NCBI GenBank assembly: GCA_965644295.1
Contig: CBFFRP010000294.1
Coordinates: 31,594 to 95,593, forward strand
Length of the DNA: 64,000 nucleotides
Source: Paraphysomonas bandaiensis
Taxonomy: Eukaryota; Protista; Chrysophyceae
Direction: 5' to 3'
In this document: positions 3,001 to 48,925 of the stretch, in pieces
How positions within the stretch are numbered: position 1 is the stretch's first letter
Layout: every line of letters starts with the position of its first letter
Translations under genes and position numbers: made by a program
The notes under the pieces: model-generated
The model's database searches: none
Seen by the model: only the letters and a program-made list of their open reading frames with translations
Told to the model about the DNA's origin: nothing

Positions 3001-3864
3001 GTATCTACACACAGAGATTATCATATGATTACATATAACTACGTACAACTTTATATATGACTATATATGACAATATATATGGCTACATACAACTTCATAT
3101 ATACGACTACATACAACTATATAGAACTATACATATGACTATATACCATTACATATATGACTATATAGAGCTATACATGACTATATTGAGCTATATACAT
3201 GACTATATAGAGCTATACATGACTATATAGAGCTTACATGACTATATAGAGCTATATACATGACTATATTGAGCAATACATGACTATATAGAGCTATATG
3301 TGACTATATAGAGCTATATACATGACTATATTGAGCAATACATGACTATATATCACTATATAGAGCTATGCATGACTATATTGAGCTATATGTGACTATA
3401 TAGAGCTATATACATGACTATATTGAGCAATACATGATTATATTGAGCTATATTCATGACTATATAGAGCTATACATGACTATATTGAGCAATACATGAC
3501 TATATATCACTATATAGAGCTATGCATGACTATATAGAACTATATATGACTATATAGAGCTATGCATGACTATATTGAGCTATATGTGACTATATAGAGC
3601 TATGCATGACTATATTGAGCTATACATGACTGCATAGAGCTATATGTGACTATATAGAGCTATATATGACTACACCCCTACCTCTAATGCTCCTGTATTG
3701 ACTTGAACAATAGTACTCGGTCTTTGAGTTCTTTGTGTTCTTTTAGCACGTAATGATTTTGCAGCTTCTTGCATCATTTGACGTCTATCATCATCACTAC
3801 TTGACTCTTCCTCGTCCTCCTCTTCTTCATTAATATTATTTAAACTATCCATATCATCATCCAT
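1..3864 (-). CDS. Multi-exon coiled-coil protein of unknown function; 3' end lies outside the window
   Basis: ATG at 3864 (MDDDMDSLNN...), followed by a chain of minus-strand ORF fragments (2744-2989, 1090-1485, 938-1138, 489-839, 47-370) bounded by GT/AG sites. The fragments are rich in E/K/L/Q heptads. The last visible exon ends in a GTATGT donor near position 30. Confidence 0.65.
3030..3672. repeat. Intronic minisatellite, ~20-22 bp unit (TATATAGAGCTATACATGAC-like), roughly 30 copies
   Basis: Visible degenerate tandem array filling intron 1 of the coiled-coil gene. Confidence 0.9.
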
Positions 3865-4583
3865 TATTTAATTAGAATATCTTGGTAGTTGTTTATTAAT
3901 ATGGTTATATTGATAGATGGTTATATGAATAGAGTTCTATATGTATGTATGTTTATATTTGAATTATGATGGTGTTTATATGGTAAAACGTATATATATA
4001 TATGTATATATGTACATATGTATATATGTATGTGTAGGTGTATGTGTATCTCATACATATAGACTATATTGTATGTAGTGGTGTGTGTATATATGTATAG
4101 GTGTATGTGTACAGCAGTGTATAGTATGGAGGGTATAGTACACTGCTGTATAGGTAGATGATAGTCTATGTCCTCTAGTCTCCAGTTTTTGGTGATATGG
4201 ACAGTAGGAATTCCTACAAACCATACCGCATAGTATGCCCTGCTGTGTACTGCTGTATATAAGTACTGTACTGTGTATACCATGTAGCGGTATATGGTAT
4301 ATACAGTACTGTATATAAACAGCAGTATACAGCAGCAGTATACCAATATACATATGGATACTACAATGCCGTCTAGCATATAGTACATAGTAGGAATCCT
4401 ACAGCAGTATACAGGCATATATGTATATATATATATATACATACATACATCCAACTCCTGCTATCATTAACGGCCTTATCACTATAATATAACAATTACA
4501 TACCCCTTACACACACACACATATATCTACATACCCTCCTCTCTCTTCCTTCTTATCTATTACCCCTCTATAAACTCAAACTA

Positions 4584-6382
4584 ATGGCTGCTACAATAGA
4601 AATGGAGCTGTGGAATATCTTCACATGCTATACATTACATGGATGTCCAAGAGATCCTAGTCGTATAACTGAAACACAATTTCTTAAATTATGTAAAGAT
4701 TCAGCTGTGTTTAATCCTTCTATGGTTGATGTACCATTAACTCAAGCGGATCTTCATCTTATATGGACATCAGAGTTAAAGGCATGCAATAAGGTGCGTA
4801 TATGTATGTATAGATGTATGTATAGATGTATGTAGAGACACTGTATATATATGTATGTATATACACTTGTATAGTTACTGTATAGATATATGTATTAGAC
4901 AACGATGGTTATATACGATATGTATAACATATAATGGCTATCTAGTCTGCTGGAAGTTCAGAATCTGGACGACTTGATTACAAGGAGCTGTTATCTTGCT
5001 TAATTAGGGTGGCTGCTAGATGCTATCCAAATTGTAGTGGTTCGGAGGAGTCCATGCAGCAGTTATTAATGGACAATATCCTTCCTATGGCTGCTCGCCG
5101 TCGGCCTGTCTCATTAACAAGCTTTGTGTCCCAACCGATGATTGAAGATCTCTTTGAATACTATCAGGAAGCTCTGCATGAAATATTTCGATACTACGCT
5201 AATAATTCTGATAACATATCACGGAACATGATTAAATCAACGGCTTCTAAATCCAGAACATTCGATGAACAGAAGAGTCTCATTGCTGAGGCTAGAGAAA
5301 GAACCCAAGCGCGCACAGTGACGGCCTCCCAGATGAATTACGAAGAGTTTTTAAGTTTTGCCAGCGATTTTGGTCTGGCAAGCAGGTAAAGAATAGTCGT
5401 ATTTGTGTATCATTGTTCTGCATAATCTATTACATAGCATGGCCCTTACTACTCTAGACCTGGGTGATATTTTCTTGACTGTAATATCCACACAGTCCTT
5501 TGAGACAACTCTGCGCAGTATCTCTTTTCGAGAATTTTGGGAGGTAAATGGATAACATCTGCTTCAAGAGCTAGCTGGATAATTAATCACTTGAATTCTT
5601 TTTGTAGGTTCTTGTGCGCTGCGCTCTGGTGGCCTTTCGAAAAACAAAAGTATGGTTATAGATAATCGTGTAATTGATATGAAATGAAACGGTTGTATAG
5701 GACATCCCCACCGAAGATAAGCTGAAAGGAATGTTTCTTTACATGTGGCGGCACATGCAACAGTCAATGCTCGCCAATAGTAGTGGAGGAGGAAGCAGAA
5801 CTGCAGCTGCTGGGGGCTTTACCATATTCCAGGGAGGGTTGCTTAGAGGCTCAAAGGTATGTACCATTCGTGACTTTTCATCTCGCGAATGGGAGTAAAG
5901 TAGTTTTGCAGATATTGAATGAGAGATTTATCATGGCTTGGAACAAAGATGGATTCAGAGATTATCTTGACAGAAATCATGTGAGGCCATAGATGCCTAT
6001 CACCACGTTTACTACATCTAACATTCGTTGTATCCCACAGAGCAGATCCGCTGCTGATACCGCTCACAACGATGGCAGCGTGATTGAGAAGGTGGTCGGA
6101 ATCCCAGCAAAATCTAAACACGGCACGAAAGATGACAGCAAGCGCAGTGGAGTAACGGCAGAGCGTCCTGCTACTCGTGCCAAAACCCCACCACGCCATA
6201 TTACTGTCAATATTCATATAAATGATAACGATGACTTGAATGACGAAAGGATTCAACCGCAACAGTTGCGTAAACTTTTGCAATCTCGGCCTGATCTTGC
6301 TCAACTTCTCTACGAATGTGTTGTGGAGGAGGGTTTGGATCAACTGGAAGACGAAGACGACGACCTTGATGCAAACACATGA
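4584..6382 (+). CDS. p25alpha/TPPP-like or EF-hand-like domain protein (multi-exon)
   Basis: The N-terminal 'FLKLCKD...LTQADLHLIW...LDYKELLSCLIRVAARCY' resembles the p25alpha domain pattern. Exons are joined by GT-AG introns, and an acidic C-terminus ends at TGA 6382. Confidence 0.55.
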
Positions 6383-7320
6383 AAGATCTTTGGTCATGTA
6401 ATGAAACTACTTGAGCATATGTAGAGTTCATTTCATTCTGTTCGTTGTTCTATATACTATACATACGTGTGAAAATGCTCATGTGACTAATTTATTCTAG
6501 ACAACTTCCTGGCAATCATTGTAGAAGATAATGGAGAATAGAATATTGCGGCCACACTATAGTTACCTTATGTCCTCTTTATTACTGTAGTTCCCCCTCG
6601 AGTAATCATATGAATTGATTTCTTATATATGTGTTAGGAAAGGGTTAATAACTAAAACGATATCAAGATTTTGGTTTACAAGTGGTAAGGGTAAATTAAT
6701 GTGGTACAGAGTACAGAGTCTCTATCATTAATAGTTCGAAGAATAAGAAAAAAACGATTATACACTATATTGAAAATCCACATACTTGAGAAAAACCACT
6801 TCAGCTATCAGCTATATATATAATATATAATATCTATAGGTATACTCTATCATTGTCAGCGTTGCAAGTGCTCTATAAACATATTAACCCCTCTCCTACT
6901 CCACTCCTGGCAGAATTCAATGCCGTCAATCGGAAAAGGCCAATGCTCCATCTCGAGGTCGTCGGTTTCATGTTTTCTTAGCGGACAAGAAGAAATTCAA
7001 AAGTAAGTATTTAGATATATAGCATATGTGTCATAGAGCATAGGTTGCTGCATGTGAAATGTAGATAAGCAAGAGGTTCTATACTCTATACTAGAATTGT
7101 TTACGACTCGTAGTACAACAACTGATAAATTGTAATATCAGAGAGATTGCATGACACGTAAATAATTATTATTGTGTGACTAATAATATCATTACTTTCA
7201 CATTGAGTGATAGAATGACATGCTTTTTCAAGCTAACAACAGATAGACGTAATTCTTGTAAAATAACCACTCACGATCTGAGAATAGCCTCCATGTATCC
7301 ATCCAGTAATTATACCCGAC

Positions 7321-9168
7321 CTAAATAGAAAATTTCGGCTGGTCCGCAATCGCAGCAACTGGGGAGCACGGAGGCGAGTCTTCCTCGGGTTCTCTTTTAG
7401 TTTTGACTGGTGTGGAGTTCGAAGATGATGGGTGAGACTTTCGCCCCACTCGGCGAACCAAATCCACATATTCTGGCTCTATAGGGTGGCCAAATGCTTC
7501 CGTTACAGGTGCCTCAGTGTCCACCACAGCCGTCTTGGCCATGTATGCAGTAGTGGGTTTAAAGAGTCGACTCTCGACGTTACTATAGACCTTCGAGCGA
7601 ATAAGTTTTGGCTTCCCTGTGTCAGGTACGGGTTGCGCAGGTGCATTAGCAGATCGAGGCCACGCGTTGTACGACGACGAAACAGTTGGACGACATAAGC
7701 GAGAATCACTGCTAATCACCTTCTTAGGAGAGAGCGAAGTACGGGACTTTCCGTTGGGAGACTGCGGAACGTGTTCATTACGAGGGACAATAAAATATGA
7801 TATGCATATAACAACCCAACATTTGAAAAGGTGTAACAAGATTCAACTTACATTGGGTGAATTCAATTCTTTCTTCTTCCAGGCTGATTCGCTGTATGCT
7901 CTTGTCGGACTATGGAGTTTCGATTCAATATTCTTAAACTTATAGTGGTGACTCTCAGGCACAGCGGGAGGGGGAAGATTGCTGTCCAATACGGACCCGC
8001 GGCGGACATTGGTGTTGTATTTCGGTTGCTGAGATGCGGTTGTCGACGCATCAGAAGTAACCGACATGCGAGGAGAGTATTTAGCCTTCTCACATGCAAC
8101 TGTCGTCTCGTGCAATCGCGAAGCAATGTCACGATAGAGTGAATCCTTAGGTGGGGACGAGAGGGCTGCAGCCTCAACGTGCAGTGTTTTTTCTGCATCT
8201 GACTTCTTGAAAGTTGTTAAAAATCTGGGCGATCCGGGGCGGGAATCTTCGCCTACCGATTTCTCGCTCCCCATCCACTTGCTACTCTCAGCTGCCAGCG
8301 TCGTGCGATGAAACCTCGCCTGTACGTGGTCATACGGGCTGCTCTCTCGTCTTGACACAACTGGAAGCTCTTTGTGAATCATCGACAGCTCACCAGGCAA
8401 CATACTTGTTGAGAATCTGCGGTTGACAGGCGAAGTCTTTTCCGAACCCTCGTCAGGATTTGCCGGCTTAACCCATTTCCCATGAATAGCAGCAGCGGTA
8501 GGATTCAGTAGACGAGACTGCACAGAGTCCTTGTACGGATCATGCCATCGAGAGCGGTCTTCAGTAGCATTAGAGAAGTCAAGAGTACTCACACTACTGC
8601 GTCGAACAGCTGTTGAAAAGACAGGCCCCGACTTCCGCCTCTCTACTTCATCAGCACTCCTGCAACTCAACCATCTGCCATTGGTCGTAGCTGCTGTGGG
8701 CGTGTGTAACTTAGACTGAACATCCTTATATTGGTGATTACCAATATACCCCTCTACATCATCATAGCTTCCTCCAATACCAGGCCATAACTTATTGCGA
8801 GGAAGTGTTCGAGGAGATGAGCTTCGTGATGTTCGAGGTGAACCACCAATAGAATTACGTGGTGATCCAGCTCTTGAACTACGAGGTGATAAACTACGAG
8901 GTGATATTGTTCCCGTCCATTTACCATTCATTGTAGCAACAGTAGGTTGATGTAATCTTGATGGTACATCTTTATATGATCCACGTCGATTATGATTTCT
9001 TTCTACTGTATTTTCAGTATTATGATTTGTATTATTCATATGAGGATGATTAATCTCATAATTATTTGAATGATCCTCATTAATTCCATTTAATGATGGG
9101 ATTTGATGAATTCTATCAAGTTCACTGTCTAAACTCTCACCACTTATAAGTACAGGCCCTGTATTCAT
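7321..9168 (-). CDS. Ser/Pro/Arg-rich protein with ~8 'YxxV.SRLH.PT.A' repeats; putative microtubule-associated protein
   Basis: ORFs 7843-9168 and 7321-7839 join across a GT-AG intron at 7851-7762, giving ~585 aa. The repeated motif is visible in the translation. Confidence 0.7.
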
Positions 9169-9785
9169 ATCTTTATCTTAACTACACTGTATTCATAATG
9201 ATATAATTGAGATAAGAAATCTTATATAATAATATCTATTAGAATTATCTCTTATTGATGTGATTGCATTGTATATATATATATATATATATGTATGGAA
9301 TGATCTATCGTACGATGATAGTTGCAGTAATCCTCATATACTATCCATTCATATGATATTATACTGTACTTCCAGGATGTTGAGGTATGAAGTGGAGGGA
9401 GATGGGATGATATCTAAAAAAACATGTACGATACAGATACAACTGAGTGTCAAGATCATCTGGATGGAGGAGGTATGATTGGTCCTCAACTTGGAAACAG
9501 GTATCTTGTAGAGATCCAATTTATTTCAGTTTTTTATGTCCAACAGCTTCACTATGTATATACGACGTAGTTCTGTACAGAGGATGAGATGCACTGAAAA
9601 TGGACGTTAGTTATGTCAATGTATGCATATATATATTAAGGTAAGAAGAAGTAACTCCTGTGATTGGACTCATTATTCATTCACTCATTTGTCTTTCACT
9701 GCAATATTGTAGCATATAGATATACATCTCTGTATATATACATACTGTCATCATTGTCTGTCTCCTCTAACCGTTAGATAGTAGT

Positions 9786-10640
9786 ATGACCTCAATCTCA
9801 TATACTCTGAAAGGAATCATATTATTACTATACTGTTTACAAATATATACATCACTTGAATATTATTCAAATAATCATTCTGATCCCACTTCAACTTATA
9901 AAGAAGATAATTATGAGAATATTTCTGTACGGAAATCAAATGCATTAATTCATGATTCCAACAAAATCAAAAGTGGTAAAAAAGCAGCCTTATCGGCACT
10001 TCGTGCTGTTTCTTCTGAAAATTGTGATTGGCGAACGAATCCTATTGCGCTTATGAAAGGAGAAGTGTGTGGTAGATACTATAAGATTCTTGGTATTGGC
10101 AATCGTCACGAGGCAGATATTGGTGATATAAAAAGAAGCTATAGATTAAAGAGCAAATCTCTTCATCCCGATAAGAACCCAAGTGGGGAATTAGCCCAGG
10201 AAGCATTTACATATTTAAGAGAAGGATATGAATGTCTCACTGATGAAAATTGTAAGCGCCACTATGACTACAGCCTTACAATCATGGAACAGGATAACTT
10301 ACGAAGACGTAAAGAGCGTCTCGCCGTGGCCACCAAATGTGCTCGTGATATAGTGGAGAAGACACACTACTACACTACATTTGCAGCCTCGATGATTGAC
10401 CAAGGTATTAGGAATATATTCTGTGTGCTAAATAACTGATTGTGCTCCTATTCCGCAGCTGCTGGTTCTGTATGGGATAGACTTGGCACGATTCGTGTAT
10501 TCGACGTCCAGCTTGGCCGAGTAGCGGGATTAGTATACGCCGCCCTTTACCGCAAAGGAGCTCTCATTGCAGTTGCGCTGGCTAAGCTAGTGTTACTGTT
10601 CAACCAAGCTGTAATGCAAAGTGTTGATCGCGTAGAGTAA
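9786..10640 (+). CDS. DnaJ-domain protein with N-terminal signal/TM segment and C-terminal hydrophobic segment
   Basis: J-domain 'YYKILGI...IKRSYRLKSKSLHPDKNP...AF..L.E.YE.L' with HPD motif; intron 10405-10458. Confidence 0.85.
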
Positions 10641-10894
10641 TAGGCCACAAAGAATGGAAAGGAATTACTCCGTGGAGTAGACTTTCAAATATTTTATAGA
10701 TAGTAGTAGTATTTATTATAGGTCAGTGTCTTTTATCGTCATTTTTATCAGTCAAATGATGTCGTATATAATAACTGAGACAAATATAAATATATTCGAA
10801 AAAGTTGAAGAGTAGTGAACTTTCTATGTTTCGGCATTTCACAGGCCAAAATATATTAGAGTGATTTTTTTATAAACTGTGGTATCAAAACTGT

Positions 10895-11063
10895 ACTTAG
10901 TAACACTTACTTCTATTCACACTTAGTAACAACTTAGTAACACTTACTTCTATTCGCACTTAGTAACAACTTAGTAACACTTACTTCTATTCACACTTAG
11001 TAACAACTTAGTAACACTTACTTCTATTCACACTTAGTAAAAACTTAGTAACACTTACTTCTA
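10895..11063. repeat. Tandem repeat, 37-bp unit (ACTTAGTAACACTTACTTCTATTCACACTTAGTAACA), ~4.5 copies
   Basis: Near-identical tandem units read directly; no spacers. Confidence 0.9.
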
Positions 11064-11256
11064 CATTAGTATACTTATGATAAACAGGTGTTGCTGAGAA
11101 CAGATTTCACCAGGTGTTACATTGCTATGTTATATATATTCTAACGCAAGAACAATGCAAACACGACAGACGTAGTACTTCTATGTATTATTTCTGCTTA
11201 CAGTATACTAGGCAAAAGAATAATTGCCAACATTAAATATAAAATCAGGACTAAAT

Positions 11257-11333
11257 TATTGTTAGATATTGATGGAGTTTTGAAACCCGCTGAACAATAC
11301 TATCGCCATTCAATATATTGTTGCCATGCCCTG
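11257..11333. repeat. Dispersed repeat, probably a transposon-end remnant, similar to 59514-59611
   Basis: Shared blocks TATTGTTAGAT, ATTGATGGAGTTTT, ACAATACTAT and CAATATATTG. Confidence 0.55.
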
Positions 11334-12035
11334 GTCACAGTCGATTGGGTCTAGTAGGTGTGCATAGATTTACCACAAAGTTTTAAAATATTGGATTTAC
11401 CAACATGGGTAAATTTGATTAATATCAACCACTCCCGATGGCTATAACACAACCCGTGATTGATAGCATTAGAAACATGAAAAGGTTTACTTTTTATATA
11501 AGTTACTGTACTTAATTTGTAATGTGTAAATGACGTTCAGCGGAGTTTTCAGTTGTGTAGATTATAATTTTGAAACTGTCATACTTCAACATACACTTCA
11601 ACCGTAGCATTACTATACCATGTAAGCTGCTCAGTATATCGCTTTGAGTCTGTGCTGCGCTGCAGTTGTCATGACAGCATCATCAGGTTCACAACTCAAT
11701 TTGTGGTTTCTTCCAGGCACATTTTGTCCACATGCTGCTGTCATCTACATGTACATCACTGCAGCCAATATCTAGATATCTTATACATATATATGTATGT
11801 ATCCTCTAGATATCTCGATATCTAGATATTCAGGGCTGTATATTGAGGTTTCTAGACTATTATTGGGAAAAACAGAACGTAAATTTGTACTTCATGTCGT
11901 TTCCATGTATACGTTATGTATACCGCGGTATACCCTACACTGCAGTTGAACACATACACAGTTATATAAGCTACAGTTTCATTTAAGGACTTCGTGTGGT
12001 GCATATATATATTCATATAATCCAAGTGTGAAGCC

Positions 12036-12807
12036 ATGATAGGTGGAGAATATGATGGTGAACTCAAAGATGGAGTTCGTGAAGGTCATGGTAAATTAAC
12101 TTGGTCAAATGGTGATTACTATGAGGGAGAATTCAAGAATGGTTTGCGTCATGGAATGGGAGTGTTTTGTGAGCCGAATGGACGAAGATATGAAGGAAAA
12201 TGGGCACTAAGTATGAGAGAAGGAGAAGGAAGAGAGACTTGGCAAAATGGAGATGAATATAGAGGTAGTTTATGGAAGTTAAGGTGATCTTACTGATTAT
12301 CTATTGCAGGCAACTACTCCAGAGATAAATTCGAAGGTCATGGTGAGCTAACTACTAAAAGCACAGTGTATAAAGGGCAATTTCATGACAACTTTAAAAG
12401 TGGACTTGGGACAATGACGTTTAAACATGGATGTAGATATGAAGGCCTATGGTCGAAGGGAAGGTTTCATGGTAAAGGGGTATATTTCTGGGCTGACGGG
12501 AGGAGATATGACGGGCAGTGGGAAGATGGCATGAGAACTGGTAGATATTTATTTGTTTTATATTGTTGTGCGGTGTATATATACATAGAATTGATCTTGA
12601 CATGTGCCATGTATAGGCCCAGGTATAATGTATTTTCCGAATGGTGAAAGATATGATGGCACATGGTTGCGAAATAAAATGCATGGACCAGGATGGTGGA
12701 GATTTACTAATGGTAAAGTTCGTTCTGGTGAGTGGCGGAATGATGAGCATGTCCGTTGGACGGGACCAGAGCAATTTGAGACACAGATGATGAAGCGAAA
12801 AAAATAG
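12036..12807 (+). CDS. MORN-repeat protein
   Basis: Many 'YEGEF/W.NG.RHG.G' MORN repeats across three ORF segments separated by two short introns. Confidence 0.9.
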
Positions 12808-14701
12808 TAGATTTGTTTATCGTTATAGTAGATCCTGTGGTAAAAGTGTTTGTCGTTTAATGTGTATAGTTTTATTAATGGATATTTGGCTCATGGCGTC
12901 ATGAATACATTCCGAATATGATTTCTTCGCGCTAGTATATGGAAGAAAGGCAATAGCTACATAGCGCAGACAGGATAGCCCAGACTGAGCAAAATTCAAG
13001 TGGTAGTACTGCACGCTAGAAACTTCACGATGCCCAATGAAAATTTCAATAAATATCTTATCAAATTTGTGTGCTCTAAAATAGAATAGCATATTTCATT
13101 TTGGTGAAGCTCAAACACTCAGTATGAAATACTAGTTTCTGGTTTCTGCATTGTATACTGTGACCACATATCAGCAACAACATCAGTACATATAATTGCA
13201 ACTTGTATACTGTCAGTAGAAGAAGCCACACCGAACATATTGCATGAATGAAGGAATACAATTGTATGGAACGTGCTGCTGTATAATAAACATTGTACAA
13301 GTAGGCTCTACCAAGGCTAGGAAAGAAAAAGACTTTTATCTGACTTACTAACAGGCAACAAATGCCATAATAAGTCGTCTACAAATGGTACATTGCTCTC
13401 AGAGCCTAAAGTTATTATTTATATTTGGTCAGAGCTTGTTAGAGCACTGTACTAAAGCCAGAAACTTAAATGCCGTTGAAATCTACCGTAATATCTATAG
13501 TATATCACTTATCTACATGTTATCGTAGAACGGATATAATACAGCAATCATTTTATGTTTATACTAGATAGGTGTCAACCAAGTTCTGATACTACTTGTT
13601 CAATAAAATAGTGGACTTTACATGATTGCAAAGGTAGCACCAGACATCCCTGCTCATATTACCACTTCTCGTCCACAAATATATATGTCCCACCAAATTT
13701 TCGTTGTATTAATTATGATAGCCGGTCTATTGAAGCTGCTATGAATCTTGCATGGTTTGGAACTCTAAAATGCATAAGCAGAGTATACTCAGGATACACA
13801 CTGGCAGATAGCTAATAATTTTGTTGACTCCTCATGTATGTAAGTAAATCTGCGTTAGATAGTCTTTATGTAGTGTTTGTCATTGCTCGAAATCATTGAC
13901 TTCTAGCTGTGTATAATGTTCATACTGCTTCTATCCACTACAAACACCCATAAGATGACATCACTACTACTTGCAGCTACGAAACAGTTTAGATGCTTTC
14001 AAAGGAAGATTATGGTATATTCTTGCATTAGAAAGTGATTCTTCCTGCTTGACAGGCGTTGATTCTCCCATATATATATAATTCTCACCCTGTCCACTTG
14101 CTTACTGATATCTACGCTGTATCCAACTTTTATAGCTATAAGGAGGTTTTGGTGAAGAACAAATTATTAAAATATTCCAAATTCCCAAAATTCAATCACA
14201 AAATCGTGAAATTCCCAACATGAAAATGGAAAAAGTAGGTTTATTTTCGGAAAGGATGGGAAATATTCTCCAAACATTGTTGATGGTGGTACTGTATACT
14301 GTACAGTACGTACAGCAACAGTGTTGTACGGTGTCCAACAGTATGTCCAGATGTATGAAGGTGTTTCTACATCTGTAGAGCTGCTGTATGTACTGTATGT
14401 AACTACTACATACGTGTGTGAGAGGTAGCGAGCGGCTATATATATAACAGAACACTGAGTGTGTTAAGTCATCCTCCATATATCCCTATATACACATCCT
14501 ACTACCATAAATCATATGGAATAACCTCTCAATACTTCACATATTATACAACTATATATATCATTATCATCTAATCGAATTACCATTATTCATATATAAT
14601 AAACACACTCTCCCCTTATTCCCTTCTTCACTCCTAGTCCACACAGTTCCTATATATAGATACATATATATAACATGCAATCATATTATATCCTATAAAT
14701 T

Positions 14702-23800: not shown

Positions 23801-26800
23801 CTAGTGTCCCTCGTGACGAACACTACATTCTCCCGTAGTAATTAGATTCATAATTCGTGGTAAAAGGGGCTTTAATGCGACCAAATTTTCACGAATAGCC
23901 TTCACACTATTACATAAACTTAATAAAAATATTAATAATAAAGCGAAGTCTATCCACCTGCCAGGAAGAGTGCATATTAGTGTCTCAAACCTTGTTCCCA
24001 CAACTGGCCTCGACAGAACCGCCAGTGGAGTATGGCGCAGACCTTTTACAAAATTAAAACACACTACAGAAACATGACTGCAGCCAACCTTCATTTATTA
24101 ATGCTTGTGCGACGCTTGGAGCTTCCCTATGAAGCAATGGCCTGATGGCTTCAGGAGTGATATCACGTGGCCCAAAACCAGTCCCACCTAGAAGTACTAT
24201 AAAACACGAGTGTGTTTCAGTTTCCATCACACACCTGATGATAGTATAAGGTGGACAGGATTCTGGCCACGCTCAGACCACTTAGTCACCATTGCAGTAA
24301 TGTCCGCTGTCACAAGACGAGATCAACTCAACATCAACTGCAACAGTAACAAATACCTCTCTCATCAGGTACAACAGCGGTGCATGCCACGCGTATGGAC
24401 ACTGGCCACGCCGGATCATCACTCATATCTTTTAACAATTTTTCCATCTCTGGTCCGCTTTCATCACGGTATACACCTTGATGAGCCTTGGAAAATAAAT
24501 CACGTGTGTTTACACAAAAATTTCAAGTTGAAACATACCCGATCAGAGATTGTTAGCAGTCCTACAGTGATCTCCAAAGCAGAACCAGGAGGTTTAGCCG
24601 CAGCTGTTAATTCCAAATGACTATCTATATCACAGTACTGAAAATACCGAAGCACTGACCTTTCGTGGAATTGATCTCCTGTGCTTTCTTCTCTGCCTCT
24701 GCATACACATCGAGTCCAGATGCTGCGGAATGATGACACTCGTCTGCTGATGGCGGGGGTATATCACCCACAAGTAGGGCAGACACCACAGACCCAATCG
24801 GGAGTAACCCTTCTCCTCTAGGCTACACAGATAATCGACAAAATTATACAATTGGAGAAGAAGATAATGTACAAACCAGGCAGAGAAGAGCATTGGCAGT
24901 GCGCATAGACAGCAGACGGCTACTGCGCTGCATTCCTGTACTTTGGGCTCGGAAAGTTTGTGTGGCGGAATCAAATTTCACATATGCCCTATATGAACAG
25001 ACAGTAAGTCACAGTATAGACGATCAAACACATGGATATAGTACCTGTGATACTCCGGCCGAACAGAATTTAGCTTGTAAGATTCTGTGGTGCGCAGCTT
25101 GACTTGCGGGTGCATGCAGTCTACACCGTACTTATTTAAGTGGGGGTTAAATGTGAACCAAAATAAGAATATACCACTTGATTTCATTCCCTGTAGCCGC
25201 TTTAGAGCAGGGTCGACCACCAGTGCCTTAGTAACAAGGCAACTAACAGGATTACCCGGAAGTCCGAAGAAATACGCCGTTCCTTTTCCAGATGGCCGAG
25301 GTACAGACGCAAATGTTGTCGGCTTACCCGGCATCATGCGCATTCGACCAAAATGAACTGTGCCAATCTCCTGTAAGAGCACTTTCACAAAGTCAGCTTC
25401 GCCCATACTGACTCCACCCGAGGTGATCACTATGTCGCACTGCTCTGCAGCAGAGAGCATGCGCTCTCTCAACGTCTCCTTGGAGTCTCGTATGATCCCA
25501 AGGTCAACACAGTCGCATCCACCCTGCGCGGGAAATGTTGAGGAAATCATAACATTACTAATATTTATTTAGCTGCATATACATATGAGTCGCATTCTAC
25601 AAAGCCCCAACACCTGTCGGAATGCAGCAATCAAAGCTGGACGGTTACTGTCTCGAATCTATACAACCCGAAATTAGAAGCGCTAAAATAATTGTGTTAG
25701 ACAATTTTTACCTGCGCGCCAGTGGGAGTCTCCCAGGGTTCCACAAGTTCGTCTCCAGTGCTCATCACTCCAACCACCGGGTTAGATGTACATGGGACCT
25801 GGTAAAGTCAGAGTCAAAACCATAGAAGCACTACAATTCAACTGTATACTTCAGCGATTCCAATAGTAGCCAAGAGACCAACCTCCGCAGGGCCTATCGT
25901 AGATCCAGAAGGTACAATGAGTTGACCGGGGCTACTATAATTAGAACAGAAGTGTGGTCGTAATGGGGGTGGAGTCTCACCTAATATCACTACCAATTTG
26001 ACGAATATTGGCGCCTTCTTGGACATCACACTTTATGGTTACGTAGGTTACACCATCCTCTTGTGAGGCAACCACAGTGTCTTCAACCTAACGCATGGTC
26101 ACAGTAGCATCGTATTATTCACACACTATACTTTAACAACGGCATTCGCCCCTGGAGGGACCTGAGAACCGGTAGTAATGTAGACGATTTTGCCTGAGTA
26201 CAATAGCCATGGTAACCACGCAAATGTAGAAAAAGGTAGTACAATACAGCGCTATCTAGTAGAATGGTATATATGAACATAGTGAGTGCATGCAGTATAA
26301 TATAGCACTATACAGCACAGTGGAGTGGTATATATATAGACTATGCACCATCGCGTAGTTCAATATAGCACTGTACAGTAGAGGGGTGTATATACACGGC
26401 ACCTGAGTGTCGTACAATATAACAATATACAATAAAGTGGTATATATACTATGCACCTTAGTGTAGTTCAAAACAGTACTGTACAGTGGAGTGGAGTGAT
26501 ATATATGTACATAGTATGCACCTGAGTGTAGTTCAATATGACACTATATATGAGAGTGGAGTGGTATATACGTACACGGTATGCACTTGAGTCACGTATA
26601 ACACTATATAGCAGTATAGTGGAGTGGTATATATGTACATACTATGCAACTGAGTATAGTTCAGTATAGCACTGTACAGTAGATTGGGATGATATATATG
26701 TACACAGGATGCATCTGACTCACGCACAGCACTTCATAGCACAGTAGAGTAGAGTGGTATATATGTACATAGTATGCACCTGAGTGAAGAGCACCGCATG

Positions 26801-41573: not shown

Positions 41574-43279
41574 CTAAAGCAAAATCAATGTCGGGTTGCT
41601 GAGATAGTACTGAAAAGCTTGAAGAAATTGAGACGCAGTAGGTTCATCAACAACCCTTCTATCCGATGACATTTGGACTGTCATGGTTGTGACTACACGT
41701 GGCTCGCCTCCATGTTCAACAGGTGGGACAACACGTTGAATACCTCCACCAACAGCCAATATACACGCCTGAGGGGGGTTGATCACAGCTGTAAATGAAG
41801 ATATTCCAAACATTCCTTGAAGATAGAGTGTAAACAAATATAGTACAATGTATAGGTATCATACCTAGGTTCGAGATTGTAAATGTACCACCTTGGTACT
41901 CCTTAGGCTGCAGTTTGCCATCGCGGGCACGTTTAGCGAGATCCTTAACTTTGTTATTGATAGCAGAGAGGCCAAGCTTATCCGCTCCTTCGAGAATTGG
42001 TGTTATCAGGCCAGTGGGGGTCGCCACTGCAACAGAGATATCCACAGAAGGGTTCAGCTCAGCAAATCCTGTGGATAGGCAAAGGGTGTAAGGGCGAGAG
42101 TCCGATAGATAATTCCTTACCTTCCGATGCAGACCAACGGCCATTGCACTCTGGAACATCACGTAGAGCCAGTGCAGCCGACTTAATAACCAGGTCGTTA
42201 ACTGAAACTGCGACACCAAAGTCTTTCTTGAGTGTCTGTCGCAAATTCATTAAACGGTCTATTTCACACTCAATTGCAGAATAGGAGTGGGGGACTGTCG
42301 CCTTCGATTCGGCGAGTCTCTTTGCTATCACTTTTCTCATGTTAGAATTGGGCAGGTCGGTGTATGTACCCTGAGGTAATATGGATATAGAAGGTGCACT
42401 GCTGTTGGTGGAAGCAACAGTATCTTTAGTGACTGCAGAATCGGCAACACTGGAAGTGGCAGGGTCCACTGCAGGTTTCGAGACAGGGGTCGATTTTAAC
42501 CTCCCCTCTTGAACGCCTCGAAGGATATCCATCTTGGATATTATGCGTCCCCCTCTCTCCGATCCTCGAAAACCAGTTACATCAAGCCCTCGGGATGCCA
42601 CTATGAACCGGGCTGCAGGAGACAGGCGTGGGGCCTCAACATTGGATGTATCGCTGGCTGTTGAAGCTACAGCAAATTATGGGATGCATAGAACAGGCAT
42701 AGTCTAACATACCTGGCAATTCAGAACTATCAGGCTCTGGTTTATTCGCATTATCGACTGGGGAAGATCCACTGGGAGTCACAGAGTCTTCAGGTAGAGT
42801 TAAAAACTCTTTATATTCTGCTTCATCACCAACCATCAACGCTATGGGAGATCCACACTGAATCTCTTGACCTTTAATGGAAGCACATATGTTAATCATA
42901 TAGCATTAATACTGGAACACTAACCATTGGCCTCAACTAATATCTTTGCTAGTACACCTTCATCTTGTACCTATATAGTCATATGACTTGATCAGTACAT
43001 CTCTATAGGTACATACAGAGTCTATACCTCAAAACCAACAGATGCTTTATCTGTCTCTACCTCACAAAGAACATCTCCTGGTCCAAATGATTCACCAGGT
43101 TTTTTATTCCATGATGATATTGTGCCATGTGTCATAGTCGGGCTTAGTGAGGGCATAGGGATAGTAGTCACCTCTACAGATAGACATCTGTATAAGAGAC
43201 CAATAGGGACACTGTGTGGCACTAGAGCCCTCCTATATGTAGCCTGAATTAACTTTGGAGTGCACCCGTGCCTTAGCAT
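41574..43279 (-). CDS. PDHX: Pyruvate dehydrogenase complex E3-binding protein (PDHX-like), an E2 paralog
   Basis: Mitochondrial presequence, one lipoyl domain (ETDKA), subunit-binding domain 'LSPAAR', and an E2-like core with '[16 protein letters not shown]' and 'MSSDRRVVD' in place of the catalytic DHR. Confidence 0.75.
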
Positions 43280-43369
43280 GATGGGGTACTATGAATGTCG
43301 ATATGAATGAAGTTGTTAATATATAACCATATATACACACCACAATAACACAATAACCATACCACCAAA

Positions 43370-43403
43370 TACATACATACAAACATACATACATACATAC
43401 ATA
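43370..43403. repeat. (TACA)n microsatellite, left flank of the transposon
   Basis: About 8 units with one AACA variant, ending in the TA target site at 43402-43403. Confidence 0.9.
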
Positions 43404-43601
43404 TTGTGAGGGAGAGCGGGTGTGAAAAAAACTTTTTTTTCTCTCTTCTTCAATCTTCTTTGATCGCGATTACAAAACTTGCTCACCTACATTAAACAGT
43501 ACCATAAACCCACAATTACCATGATAAGCACTGCAAATCAAGGTGATTTCTTCTACAATGTGTTGAAGCAACCTTCTCTCACATGTTTGTCATTCGCAGC
43601 A
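43404..43601 (+). repeat. Left terminal inverted repeat (198 bp)
   Basis: Reverse complement of 46681-46878. Confidence 0.95.
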
Positions 43602-45285
43602 TGTCATCAGACAGCCAAAACTCTGAAATAGAAGAAGGTCTGTGGGTGCGAGTAAAAATTGTCGCTTTGACTAAATTTCGAGAGGAAGCACAGGCATTCT
43701 CTGTAAATCGGTCCGAGTTAACTTCTTCGACAGACCAATTAACGATTTGGGTGAGAATTACTGCAATTACTGCTAAAGATGTTTTAATATAACATTTTTT
43801 TTAGATTCCAGGAGGTAATCTTTTTGAAGACGATAGTAATATCTGGCGTGTCAAAGGTCATGCATTCTTGCATGCACTCGTTGAGGGCGTAGCGAGGCAA
43901 GCGTATAATCAAAAGTTATTGCCACCACTATCAGACTTCAACGACCAACTCAGGATAGACTTCAGCAGAGGTATTACTGTTCGAACTGCAACAAGTTCTG
44001 GTATCATTGGTAATTTCCACATGATCCCTCCCGATGGAGAATTGGACATACCGTTACTTCCCACTAGACGCCAGACAGATCACGATAGGAAGTGTTGTCG
44101 GGAAAACGCTTCCCACTATGTGGTGATTGCTGGTGTCCCGTTCCAAAATTGCCCAGACGATGTGATACTACAGAGACAGCTCAGCTTTGTTGATTCTTCC
44201 CTTGCGCTTGTTAAACATAAACAGAATGATCTTCCCCTCTGTAAATACATGCACTCAAAATATTTCAAAGTTGGCCTGAATCATCGTCCAGGAAATGATA
44301 TGAACACGTACTGGTCACCGGCAATGAAAGAAGCCATGACCGAGTGCAGTGAAGAGGGTCAAAGACTCTTCGAGCTTAATCCTCCAAAAAGTATGCAAAG
44401 TGGTATCCGTAAGCAGAGAGGATTTGGTCACGGTGGTCAATCAGGTCTTAAGCTTTCAACCGCCAGTGAACATGATGCGGCGGACACATCGAGTCATTTG
44501 GAAGCACAAAGGAATCGCTTGCATATCGAGCGATGTCGTGCCAAAGCTTGGAGCAAGAAAGATTTGATTTCTGATAGCAAATTGAAAGATCTACTCGAGC
44601 TTCCCGAGGGCAAGAAAGTAAAGAGCTACTCGCAGTTAAGAACATACTTATGTGAATACTTTAGTACCCTAGAAGGTGAAGAACGTGCAGCTGAAGACCC
44701 GTTGGAGTATGACCCGACACTCGATACATGGGTTCTCAAGTTGGATTGGATGGGTCAAGGCTTCCCAAAATATAGTGACCTCAAGGGGGGTAATAAGCCA
44801 ATACCTGCAGCCCGTGAAAATATCATATTCTCGTCGGTTCGAATAGGACCACACCCGCCACCACCACCGCCCCCTGCTCTACCAGCTCCTCCAGGTGTTC
44901 CAGCACAAGGTTGGCCTATCCCAATTGGTGTTCCCCCTGCTGGAAGTAGTGGCCCTTCTTTTGGTGTCCCTTTTCCCCTTCCACCAGACTGTGGACCATC
45001 GCCCTACGGGGTATACCCCCTCCTATTTATCCAACTGGGGGTTTTCCTTTTCAGCAGCAGCTTCCTCCGTATTACCCACAGGGATCTGCTCCTCGGCATT
45101 ATCCGCATCACATGCTGTATGGCTACCCGCCAGAATATTACCACGGCCACAGGGATTTTGATTATGCATCGCGTTATCGCCAACAGCGATTTGCCTGGGG
45201 AGAAGGAATGCGAAAGGATGAGAGGGGTGAGTGGATAGCATATGAGGCCGAGTATGAAATTCCTTATCCTGCCGACCCTTACTAA
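43601..45285 (+). CDS. Transposon cargo protein of unknown function (~543 aa after repairing one 1-nt frameshift)
   Basis: Exon 1 (43601-43750), GT-AG intron (43751-43804), and exon 2 in frame with ORF 43868-45238. After the GGGG/CCCCC runs at ~45008-45020, the P/Y/Q/H-rich reading continues in another frame to TAA at 45285. Confidence 0.75.
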
Positions 45286-45639
45286 ATAGAACAGATTGCA
45301 GTCAATCGTTATCTGCCGGGTCTCATTTATTATTTATTTCGAATCTTGGTAATTTTTGGATGAATTTAACACATACGCTCCGATGCATCGAAATTTAGGT
45401 TTAGACTCACTAACCGATTTTCTTTTTTCTTCTTAGTATGCAACTGTATGAACTGATATTTTAAATTCTCCACAAACTTTTCAAAATTTTGTTTTTTTGA
45501 TTTATTAATATTACTTGAATCTATTGCGTATAATTAATCATATTCTATCACGAAGTAGTAGCAAGCATATCACATTCAATCATCAGTACATCTATATTAG
45601 TAACTAGTGAGTAGAGTATAGAGTATAATCTGCAAATGA

Positions 45640-46670
45640 TCAATAGTTACAGGCTTCGCACTGTTCTTTCCAAGTAACGGTAATATCCACTCGATTGAAT
45701 AAATTGCACGCAGTTTCGGCAGTACAGCATGACCACAAAGCTTCATGTAGTTGAGCTGCAAGTGGTTTATATGCGTACATAATTCCCCACTTCTTTCTAA
45801 TGTGCGCTTTGGCAAGATGAAATACGGGTTCAATTGGTGAAAAATCATAAGAATAAGGGGGAGAAACACAACCATCACGCCGAATTCTGCACACATATTA
45901 TAAATATCTATCTTCACGTGCGTCGAAGCATTATCCATGAGCAGCACACTGCGATCCCCAGGAAAAGGGTTCATGTGGGGAAAGATGTCATGTTCTAGGG
46001 CATCTAGAAATGTATTATGATCAACATTTTCTTCGTGTACAGTAACAGCAAAAACTCCTTCGATAGACATTGCAGCAATGGCACAACAACTAACTTGGGG
46101 ATTGAAGTGGCCTATAACATCACCACTCACGAAGGCAGGGTAGCCATGTGGTGAACGCCCATATCGGCGTAGAACTTCTGCCGGCTTGAGATGTGATTCG
46201 TCCACAACAGCATAGCAGCGAGCTGGAATTTCATCCAATGATCGGGCCAAATTATTCTTATAGTAACGCCTCAAGCCCTCATTTCTGTTGTGGGAAATTC
46301 TTTGACAAACTTTTACGGTATAGCCCTCAGTGTTCATGGCATGCTTCATTTGGTGCTCCAAGTACGCCACGCCGTACACATTAAAAACCTTTTCGCATAA
46401 TTCTTCGTTGGAATAAGTTGAATTTTCTGCCAGCAACTCTTTAACAAAATTGATATGCTCGAGTGAAATGACAGTGTGGTGCGAATGGTGTGAAGACTCT
46501 GGTTTAACTGATCCAGTGTCCAGATATTTGTCCAACCACCTTCTAACTGTGCTTTGGGACACATCGTATTTCTCGTATATATGATCTAGTGATGCGGCCA
46601 CAGAATTTGTGATTTCCAGAGAGTGATCAAACACATCCAAAATTAAAAGACGGAAAGCCTCGGAATACAT
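45640..46670 (-). CDS. DD34E transposase (IS630-like DDE_3 with N-terminal HTH) carrying one 1-nt frameshift
   Basis: HTH 'VSQSTVRRWL', D1 'VVDESH', D2 'LLMDNASTH' and E 'PPYSYDFSPIE'. There are 34 residues between D2 and E once one C is restored in the C5 run at 45857-45861. Confidence 0.9.
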
Positions 46671-46680
46671 GTAAATATGG

Positions 46681-46878
46681 TGCTGCGAATGACAAACATG
46701 TGAGAGAAGGTTGCTTCAACACATTGTAGAAGAAATCACCTTGATTTGCAGTGCTTATCATGGTAATTGTGGGTTTATGGTACTGTTTAATGTAGGTGAG
46801 CAAGTTTTGTAATCGCGATCAAAGAAGATTGAAGAAGAGAGAAAAAAAAGTTTTTTTCACACCCGCTCTCCCTCACAA
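46681..46878 (-). repeat. Right terminal inverted repeat (198 bp)
   Basis: Reverse complement of 43404-43601. Confidence 0.95.
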
Positions 46879-47322
46879 TACATACATACATACATACATA
46901 CATACATACATACATACATACATACATACATACATACATACATACATACATACATACATACATACATACATACATACATACATACATACATACATACATA
47001 CATACATACATACATACATACATACATACATACATACATACATACATACATACATACATACATACATACATACATACATACATACATACATACATACATA
47101 CATACATACATACATACATACATACATACATACATACATACATACATACATACATACATACATACATACATACATACATACATACAAACATACATACATA
47201 CATACATACATACATACATACATACATACATACATACATACATACATACATACATACATACATACATACATACATACATACATACATACATACATACATA
47301 CATACATACATACATACATACA
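46879..47322. repeat. (TACA)~111 microsatellite
   Basis: 444-bp near-perfect array with a single AACA variant, starting at the TA target site. Confidence 0.98.
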
Positions 47323-47376
47323 CACATAATCATCTTAAAGTATATAGTGTTACTAGTTACTATAACTACAACAAAC

Positions 47377-48925
47377 ATGCTCACACTTACACTACTAATT
47401 CTTCTAAGTTACCATACACTATCTCTCTCTAGGGTCATCCTAGGTAACCAAATCCTTCGTGACACACGCTATCATAGCCTACATGGTCATCGTGTGGCTG
47501 TATTAACTAACCCTACTGGTGTATTCATGGATACATTAGATCATATCGTAGATATTATGTCCAGTGATACAGAGATTAATGTAGTAGCAGTCTTTGGTCC
47601 AGAGCATGGGTTTCGTGGTGATAAGCAAGCAGAGACAGGCGATGAGATGGTATATATAGACTCTGCTACTAAACTGCCTGTCTTCAGTGCATATAATATG
47701 AATTCAACTCAAATTGCAAATACAATGGAAGAAATGAATATTACTGCAGTTGTTGTTGATATGCAAGATGTGGGAGTTCGATTATATACGTTTATATGGA
47801 CCATGTATGACGTTATGGAGGGTGCTAAAGAGCGCTCTATGTATGGAACATCGAAGGTGAAAATTGTCGTCTGTGATCGTCCTAATCCTCTGGGTGGTGA
47901 GCGTGTGGAAGGGCCATTGTTAAATATGTCCTGCTGTTCCTCAGGCTATGGTAAATATCGGATCACACATATACACGGACTGACTATCGGTGAATTGAGT
48001 CTTCTTTTCAATGAGGATATCCGTCTTCCATCCTCACAGGTTGAAGTAATCCGGATGCGTAACTGGCACCGAGATATGAATTGGGAAGAAACTGGTCTCT
48101 TGTGGATTCCTCCTTCACCTAATGTCCCCACACCCAACACTGCATTGTCGTACGGAGCCACAGTATTTCTCGAAGCCACCACTATTGCGGAGGGAAGGGG
48201 GACGACTACTCCGTTTGAGCTGTTTGGTGCTCCGTTTCTAGATGCTCTGGTGAGTACGTAAAATGTTAAGGATTTTCTGCTATTATTTATACTTTGATTT
48301 TGATATGCTTAATTATTGTGTTCCTATCCACTAATTCCATACACACTTGATATTTCCATTGATTTTACAGGAGGTTGCATCTCGTCTGAATCATGATTTT
48401 TCTTGCCCTAACGGGGCTAGTGCATTCCGAGCAGCCTACTTTCAACCAACTTTTTCAAAGTATAATGGAAGTACAGTTGCTGGGGCCCAATGGATGGAAA
48501 ACAGAGAACCATGTGGATTGGCTACGCCGCCGTCTCTAGATATAAATACTACGAATAAGACTGTTTTTCGGTACGTTGTGAATACACCCTATCTTTTTGT
48601 ATCTTTTGATTTATCATATTCATTAAATAAAATTAAAATCATACTTTGTCATCTCACTGTGACGCATAGCAGAGGAGACATATTTTATAGCGGCACACTT
48701 ATTCTGACAGCTTTACGGGATATTAGTACCCCATCATCAGCCTTCGAGTGGGACGGGTCTTGGTTTGGTCATCCTGGCACAGAGCTCATAGATCAGTACG
48801 CTGGGACACCAGAGTACCGTCTTATGATCGACGCTGGTGTATCATCAGAAGATATATCCGCATATTTCGAATCGGATGTTGCACAATTTGTGAATCGAAG
48901 AAAAACTGTTCTGTTGTATCCTTAG
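47377..48925 (+). CDS. Secreted NamZ/DUF1343-family exo-beta-N-acetylmuramidase-like protein
   Basis: Signal peptide plus 'TNPTG', 'FGPEHGFRG', 'DMQDVGVR.YT', 'DRPNPLGG', 'HGLTIGEL', 'W.PPSPN.P' and 'EGRGTT.PFE..GAP'; introns 48250-48370 and ~48570-48669. Confidence 0.88.

Follow-up and report, generated by a model that had tools for sequence, protein, structure and literature searches.

Transposons of the IS630/Tc1/mariner (ITm) superfamily are the textbook case of an element that needs a transposase alone, and the multi-gene members of the superfamily include the ciliate TBE/Tec elements and the Fanzor-bearing Tc1/mariner elements. In maize Mutator, the element MuDR carries the convergent genes mudrA and mudrB, which are read inward from long, near-identical, promoter-bearing terminal inverted repeats (TIRs), and PIF/Harbinger elements encode an obligatory second protein. 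Here we describe a transposon of Paraphysomonas bandaiensis (Chrysophyceae), located within a stretch of 64,000 nucleotides (contig CBFFRP010000294.1 of assembly GCA_965644295.1, positions 31,594 to 95,593 of the forward strand; hereafter the window), in which an IS630/Tc1-type transposase gene and a second gene, here called the partner gene, lie between the same TIRs. The element occupies window positions 43402-46880 (3,479 bp including the TA duplications), and we consider it probable that it is an autonomous IS630/Tc1/mariner cut-and-paste transposon built as a two-gene unit, with the partner as an accessory component.

The TA duplication, the TIRs and the curated DDE domain of its transposase were all found, and the element belongs to the ITm superfamily. 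With DD34E Tc1-like elements and bacterial IS630 it shares these features, including a DDE_3 domain with DD34E spacing, together with a putative N-terminal helix-turn-helix (HTH) region and a transposase of about 340 amino acids. Unlike them, it has a second conserved gene and long perfect TIRs (198 bp here, about 1.1 kb in a second family described below) that abut both start codons, and no internal repeats of the inverted repeat/direct repeat (IR/DR) type were found in the TIR. In comparison with ordinary ITm elements at large, it is distinguished by an obligatory orphan partner, by TIRs abutting the starts and by a bias toward insertion in (CATA)n microsatellites. The likeness to MuDR lies in the layout and would be functional, not ancestral, as MuDR has a Mutator-like element (MULE) transposase and a 9-bp target-site duplication (TSD); the partner described here has no detected similarity to any named family. 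PIF/Harbinger elements are alike in their obligatory second protein but have a PIF-type DDE transposase, a 3-bp TSD and a Myb/SANT-like partner; here the TSD is TA, the transposase is of the DDE_3/IS630 type and the partner has no Pfam match. TBE/Tec and Fanzor-bearing elements are alike as multi-gene members of the same superfamily, but in Pfam and NCBIfam the partner matches no TnpB/RuvC, zinc-finger, kinase or recombinase family. Membership of the Harbinger, MULE and Fanzor-bearing groups is excluded for this element. No description of a two-gene ITm family with this partner was found in the literature searched, in keeping with the proposal of a first-pass annotation, made from the window sequence, that the family is possibly undescribed and has two components.

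Comparison of window 42000-48500 with itself gave one long inverted repeat, with arms of 200 nt at 43402-43601 and 46681-46880 that are 100% complementary. The palindromic TA at the outer end of each arm is the target duplication, which leaves TIRs of 198 bp at 43404-43601 (plus strand) and 46681-46878 (minus strand); these are as perfect as the first-pass annotation had stated. The left TIR ends at the A of the partner-gene ATG, and on the other side the transposase ATG (46670) is set back 10 bp from the inner edge of the right TIR. The TA duplications flank these arms at 43402-43403 and 46879-46880. As the surrounding DNA is a (CATA)n repeat, the duplication of the window copy is indistinguishable from it; every complete copy has TA on either side of the same termini, and so do the four among them that lie in unique DNA (L032, L033, L036 and L037, where L numbers denote element copies or loci, C numbers contigs of the assembly, itself G000, and P numbers database proteins), and it is at these four that the duplication proposed earlier can be seen.

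With the TIR as the query, 26 ends were obtained across all 669 contigs (62.6 Mb) of the assembly, corresponding to 13 full-length elements. The TIR sequence was identical in 24 of these ends, and the search returned no solo TIRs or internally deleted derivatives in the assembly. Since the flanks of the 13 copies show no similarity to one another, the copies represent independent insertions at unrelated sites, and segmental duplication or alleles as their source could be ruled out on the same grounds. Twelve copies are separated by 0-5 substitutions over 3.48 kb, while L038 differs from the others by 10-13 substitutions and two small deletions. The family is therefore very young, as had been supposed from the identity of the TIRs of the window copy. 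Linked single-nucleotide polymorphisms (SNPs) at 44410 and 46187 define two sublineages among the copies.

The transposase gene (45640-46670, minus strand) encodes 343 amino acids in intact copies, and the uninterrupted protein is encoded by L028, L033, L035 and L038. It matched Pfam DDE_3 with 68.1 bits (cut-off 28.6; E-value 9.5e-19) and the NCBIfam model 'IS630 family transposase' with 104.6 bits (cut-off 100). In an alignment of 11 sequences, the transposase and ten relatives, residues D157, D246 and E281 were invariant. The constant spacing of D246 and E281 assigns the transposase to the DD34E group, and by this alignment the element is a DD34E (Tc1-like/IS630-like) member, which upholds the earlier call of an IS630-like DD34E transposase on the minus strand. 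Matches to HTH_23, HTH_32, HTH_33 and PAX were seen at residues 27-139, every one of them under the Pfam cut-off, and a profile of the transposase family compared with the PDB weakly matched the catalytic domains of SETMAR (mariner) and Sleeping Beauty (E 0.02-0.15). Among 5.8 billion proteins we found 13 relatives, all of them environmental or unnamed sequences.

The partner gene lies on the plus strand and is composed of two exons. Exon 1 (43601-43750, 50 codons), the ATG of which uses the final base of the left TIR, corresponds to residues 1-50 of both P0003, a JGI/IMG protein from a 2679-nt contig, and the MMETSP product P0011. It is followed by a 54-nt GT..AG intron (43751-43804, plus strand), whose junction, TIW/IPGG, is found in P0003 as well as in the transcript-derived P0011, and by exon 2 (43805-45285, plus strand, with the stop codon at 45283-45285), which has 493 codons in intact copies and an intact frame in L029, L032 and L036. 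Together the exons encode 543 amino acids, equal residue for residue to P0003 and in agreement with the spliced plus-strand gene of about 540 amino acids predicted earlier. Two MMETSP transcript products, P0002 and P0011, fall in the same protein cluster as P0003; the C-terminal frame of P0002 is intact, and P0011 combines the same splice junction with a 13-bp deletion known from copy L038. The existence of these MMETSP and JGI products indicates that the partner gene is transcribed and spliced, and the shared deletion indicates that the culture used for the transcriptome holds the same element variants.

The two genes are convergent, with the stop codons separated by an AT-rich spacer of 354 bp (45286-45639) that would hold the 3' ends of both transcripts; the tail-to-tail arrangement reported in the first-pass annotation is thus correct. 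The spacer copes with an insertion of 1,033 bp in copy L034 (G000:C217:216781-221300). The nested sequence, located between the stop codons at the equivalent of window position ~45428, is a hAT-like non-autonomous element with TIRs that start CAGGGATAGGG and an 8-bp duplication, CTTCTTAG.

The partner protein consists of a conserved region of approximately 350-400 amino acids followed by a low-complexity tail. Using the P0003 record or exon 2 (L032:704-2182) as partner queries, we searched 1.84 billion cluster representatives exhaustively with HMMER and obtained six hits, among which there were four distinct relatives. The hits included P0010 (544 amino acids, 42% identical, E 6e-64), a cluster comprising P0013 and P0017 (~30% identical) and the fragments P0012 and P0014. 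A word-index protein search returned the partner's own cluster alone, and its repetition with a profile gave nothing more; the ESM Atlas, searched by features and by structure, yielded no usable match, and no relatives were found in scans of viral and prokaryotic genome collections. Motifs shared among the partner proteins are DFSRGI-VRT, NH-PGND--TYW-PAM, AEHDAA, LP-DKK, QLR and GDP-E-D. The tail varies with lineage, being rich in P/Y/Q/H here, in RS/RD in P0010 and in H/R/S in P0013 and in the second family. A zinc-binding role was considered for the protein and is not evident, as the candidate Cys/His positions are not conserved in P0017 and no conserved Cys/His cluster is present.

We found both genes between the same TIRs in all 13 copies. 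The association extends beyond the young copies. A degenerate relic at C375:41222-44505 (L063-L069) has kept the convergent order, with nucleotide identities of 90.6% for the transposase gene and 76-83% for the partner gene. In this relic the 3' two-thirds of the partner gene is doubled as an inverted duplication meeting near 43690, and the TIRs are mostly missing. A mutation bias resembling repeat-induced point mutation (RIP) was considered for the relic and ruled out, since its substitution spectrum is symmetric.

A second family, family B, is represented on contig C249 by a ~5.9-kb element with ~1.1-kb TIRs and a 345-amino-acid transposase that is 34% identical to that of the first family (family A). 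Opposite this transposase lies a multi-exon gene with a collinear match to the partner profile, at hmmsearch E-values of 3e-15 (main exon) and 7e-4 (first exon). The layout is convergent as in family A, and both genes start close to the inner ends of the TIRs. More pieces of family B were found on C37, C284 (where both genes are present but degenerate), C610, C638 and C358. At the C249 locus (4000-13428; L070 and L071), additional direct and inverted TIR copies lie just upstream of the element (4000-6405), which suggests nested or abortive insertions. On C37 (L072; 4655-5464 and 5856-9019), the family B transposase fragment is truncated by a copia-like Gag-Pol retroelement.

Among the metagenomic relatives, partner P0010 comes from a JGI contig of 3470 nt, and the longest contig of P0018, a transposase 63% identical to that of family A, is likewise 3470 nt; for partner P0013 and the 53%-identical transposase P0020, the longest contig is 3942 nt in both cases. 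The equality of the contig sizes suggests that partner and transposase are co-resident in these two relatives. Two metagenome scans for the genomic context of the relatives found nothing. Identities of transposase and partner were 63% and 39-42%, 53% and 30-32%, and 34% and ~23%, respectively, in the three divergent lineages. As the two values drop in step, the genes appear to have descended jointly, with the partner evolving faster. No stand-alone host copy of the partner was found in the assembly outside such elements. Taken together, the 13 copies, the C375 relic and the C249 family, among which no copy lacked the gene or carried an unrelated fragment in its place, support the view that the accessory gene belongs to the element as a fixed component; the co-occurrence check proposed with that view gave the same second gene within the same TIRs in 13 of 13 copies. 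The first-pass annotation was right that both genes are present in a two-gene transposon, but the window copy is not intact as assembled, with both frames interrupted, and 'cargo' is the wrong word for what is a co-evolving partner.

The position of the genes relative to the TIRs suggests how both may be expressed. Identity between the two TIRs runs as far as the start region of each gene, ending at that region or at the base before it, and the start codons in family A are located at, or at most 10 bp from, the TIR inner edges. Just upstream of the partner ATG, the left TIR has the sequence features of a 57-nt GT..AG leader intron (candidate at 43543-43599, plus strand; mirrored at 46683-46739, minus strand). 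Each TIR could provide a promoter and a leader, possibly containing this intron, such that both genes would be expressed from identical sequence. Within 43479-43631 (plus strand) and its mirror in the right TIR, each TIR has an upstream ATG (43520) that opens a short frame overlapping the main start codon out of frame, and, if the leader is as proposed, this frame may act as a regulatory upstream open reading frame. Scans for bacterial promoters and terminators gave a background level of hits, and are irrelevant for a eukaryote.

In the two-component reading that we favor, the transposase would bind the TIR ends through its putative N-terminal HTH region, followed by excision and integration at TA. 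The partner would be an accessory factor that the element itself encodes and needs in order to propagate. Its most likely role would be that of a nuclear cofactor associated with nucleic acid or chromatin, with a part in the assembly of the transpososome, in regulation or in the choice of target, and the protein would be made up of the conserved region and a disordered tail that varies with lineage (P/Y-rich here, RS- or H/R/S-rich in the relatives). A number of results weigh against this reading. The partner proteins P0003 and P0010 had no match in Pfam or NCBIfam, and the partner profile had none among PDB sequences (best E 1). The AlphaFold model of the whole partner was poor, with a predicted local distance difference test (pLDDT) score of 52, and it gave no fold match, with no Foldseek hit at E ≤0.2 and VIA-align Z scores of at most 4.5. 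When residues 265-415 were modeled alone, the pLDDT rose to 74.6 and the order of elements, H-S-H-H-S-S, resembled that of a winged helix, but this too is a weak model; winged-helix proteins headed the Foldseek list with all rows at E ≥0.35, and VIA-align gave Z scores of at most 3.4 and no winged-helix rows. With these values no fold is assigned to the partner, and the predicted winged-helix resemblance is a lead, not a result. In addition, the coding changes within the family (5 nonsynonymous and 2 synonymous) are too few to show selection, the promoter and leader proposed for the TIR are read from sequence features, and the co-residence of the two genes in the metagenomic relatives is drawn solely from equal contig sizes. 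Finally, none of the 13 copies has both genes intact as assembled.

In the window copy, a homopolymer of five C at 45016-45020 (plus strand) is one base short of the six C present in intact copies, as seen in the alignment of copies, and shifts the partner frame; a run of five G at 45857-45861 (five C on the coding minus strand) is also one base short and puts the transposase out of frame immediately ahead of the PPYSYDFSPIE motif, which contains the catalytic E. Both genes are therefore interrupted in this copy, and its DDE_3 match is divided between two frames. The six-base C run is present in L029, L032, L036 and L038 and in the transcripts, and one extra G is present in the second run in L028, L033, L035 and L038. 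If the frameshifts were real, no copy would be free of a defect in one gene or the other, and persistence of the family would have to depend on complementation between copies. The counts can be taken in this sense, with the five-C and the five-G forms each in 9 of 13 copies and the two intact genes together in none, yet we consider this interpretation unlikely. Every indel among the copies sits in a homopolymer of at least 5 bases, and the distribution of the indels cuts across the two SNP-defined sublineages. The transcript-derived P0002 and P0003 have an intact partner frame. Moreover, intact 343-amino-acid forms of the transposase are encoded on 12 contigs of independent assemblies, whereas the frameshifted product of 357 amino acids is absent from a collection of 15 billion proteins. 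For these reasons we favor assembly error, and the homopolymer indels are probably of that origin.

The insertion sites of the element are strongly biased. The window contains a single (CATA)n array, and it is this microsatellite that received the insertion; 46881-47328 of it remains on the right (a stretch of 451 bp when counted from 46878) and a short remainder at ~43360-43401 on the left. Of the 13 copies, seven sit within (CATA)n arrays, in one orientation or the other; two others are found within ~100 bp of an array, and four occupy ordinary unique DNA. When perfect arrays of at least 40 bp are summed, (CATA)n accounts for at least 0.51 Mb of sequence in the 62.6-Mb genome (~0.8%), an unusual abundance for a single tetranucleotide. 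With 2-6% of TA sites expected in arrays, the probability of finding at least 7 of 13 copies there is 5e-9 to 2e-6. This significant excess qualifies the element as a microsatellite-targeting transposon. Formation of the arrays from excision footprints was ruled out, as the element ends are unlike the CATA unit. DNA transposons that target microsatellites are known in plants, namely Micron and MuTAnT (PMC4486113; PMC5907723). Those elements are alike in their strong insertion excess within one microsatellite type, but they are Mutator-like or non-autonomous and insert in (TA)n, whereas the element described here is a probably autonomous Tc1/IS630-type transposon in the (CATA)n arrays of a protist.

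The window array lies in the head-to-head gap between two divergent genes, a minus-strand lipoyl-domain gene (first exon at 43022-43279) and a plus-strand open reading frame that begins at 47347. The former exon is pyruvate dehydrogenase E2-like and the latter frame (47347-48261) is DUF1343-like; the 3.5-kb insertion now separates the two. Further tandem repeats in the window are found at 3029-3672, 10895-11063 and 26355-26786, with periods of 20-42, 37 and 65-128 bp, respectively.

The bias could arise from deformable alternating pyrimidine-purine DNA together with open chromatin in promoter gaps, or from targeting by the element's own proteins. The partner could accordingly be seen as a targeting or tethering factor. 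By recognizing either (CATA)n arrays or the chromatin found in head-to-head promoter gaps, it would direct the transposase to such sites, as integrase tethers do for some retrotransposons. The insertion counts and the position of the window array between divergent genes are compatible with such a function, as are the order of elements in the partner domain and the winged-helix DNA binders at the top of its Foldseek list. Nevertheless, we regard it as rather improbable, given the Foldseek and VIA-align scores cited above and the presence of four copies in ordinary unique DNA. Tc1-type transposases on their own prefer deformable TA-rich DNA, and a host-side cause, either open chromatin or the deformability of the alternating pyrimidine-purine sequence, is no less likely than targeting by the partner. 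In its fullest form, this view would make the partner a subunit that reads DNA or chromatin and guides a Tc1/IS630-type transposase to the (CATA)n arrays of promoter gaps, with the identical TIRs serving as complete expression cassettes for both subunits. We would give this only a small chance; were it true, the element would be a naturally two-component, target-selecting cut-and-paste transposon.

A role outside the chemistry of transposition is also conceivable, in which the partner would act in counter-defense and protect the element copies from silencing. VANC, encoded by VANDAL21 of Arabidopsis, is an anti-silencing factor of this kind. The conservation of the partner with the element despite its faster evolution relative to the transposase, the differences in the low-complexity tail between lineages and the lack of any detected catalytic or known DNA-binding family in the partner would all be in line with such a function. 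The proposal is, however, one of pure analogy, and its chances appear slim. A passenger status of the second gene, which would then be a host gene taken up in a single capture and of no use to the element, might be thought of for an orphan protein with no recognizable transposition-related domain, but is very improbable when the gene keeps open frames in lineages whose transposases are 34-63% identical, no host paralog exists outside the elements, the gene starts at the TIR edge exactly like the transposase gene in two families, and no deletion derivative without it occurs among the 13 copies.

The accessory-factor reading therefore remains the one we prefer for this element of a marine protist, which is unlike ordinary Tc1/IS630 transposons in always carrying a second transcribed gene beside that of the transposase. 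The maintenance of a fast-evolving orphan gene through deep divergence implies a further requirement of the element, be it regulation, targeting or defense against silencing. A young and transcribed family of small elements (3.5 kb) makes the role of the partner directly testable, by comparing the transposase with and without it. The (CATA)n bias, in turn, may offer a case from nature of a DNA transposon that selects safe sites within the compact genome of a protist.

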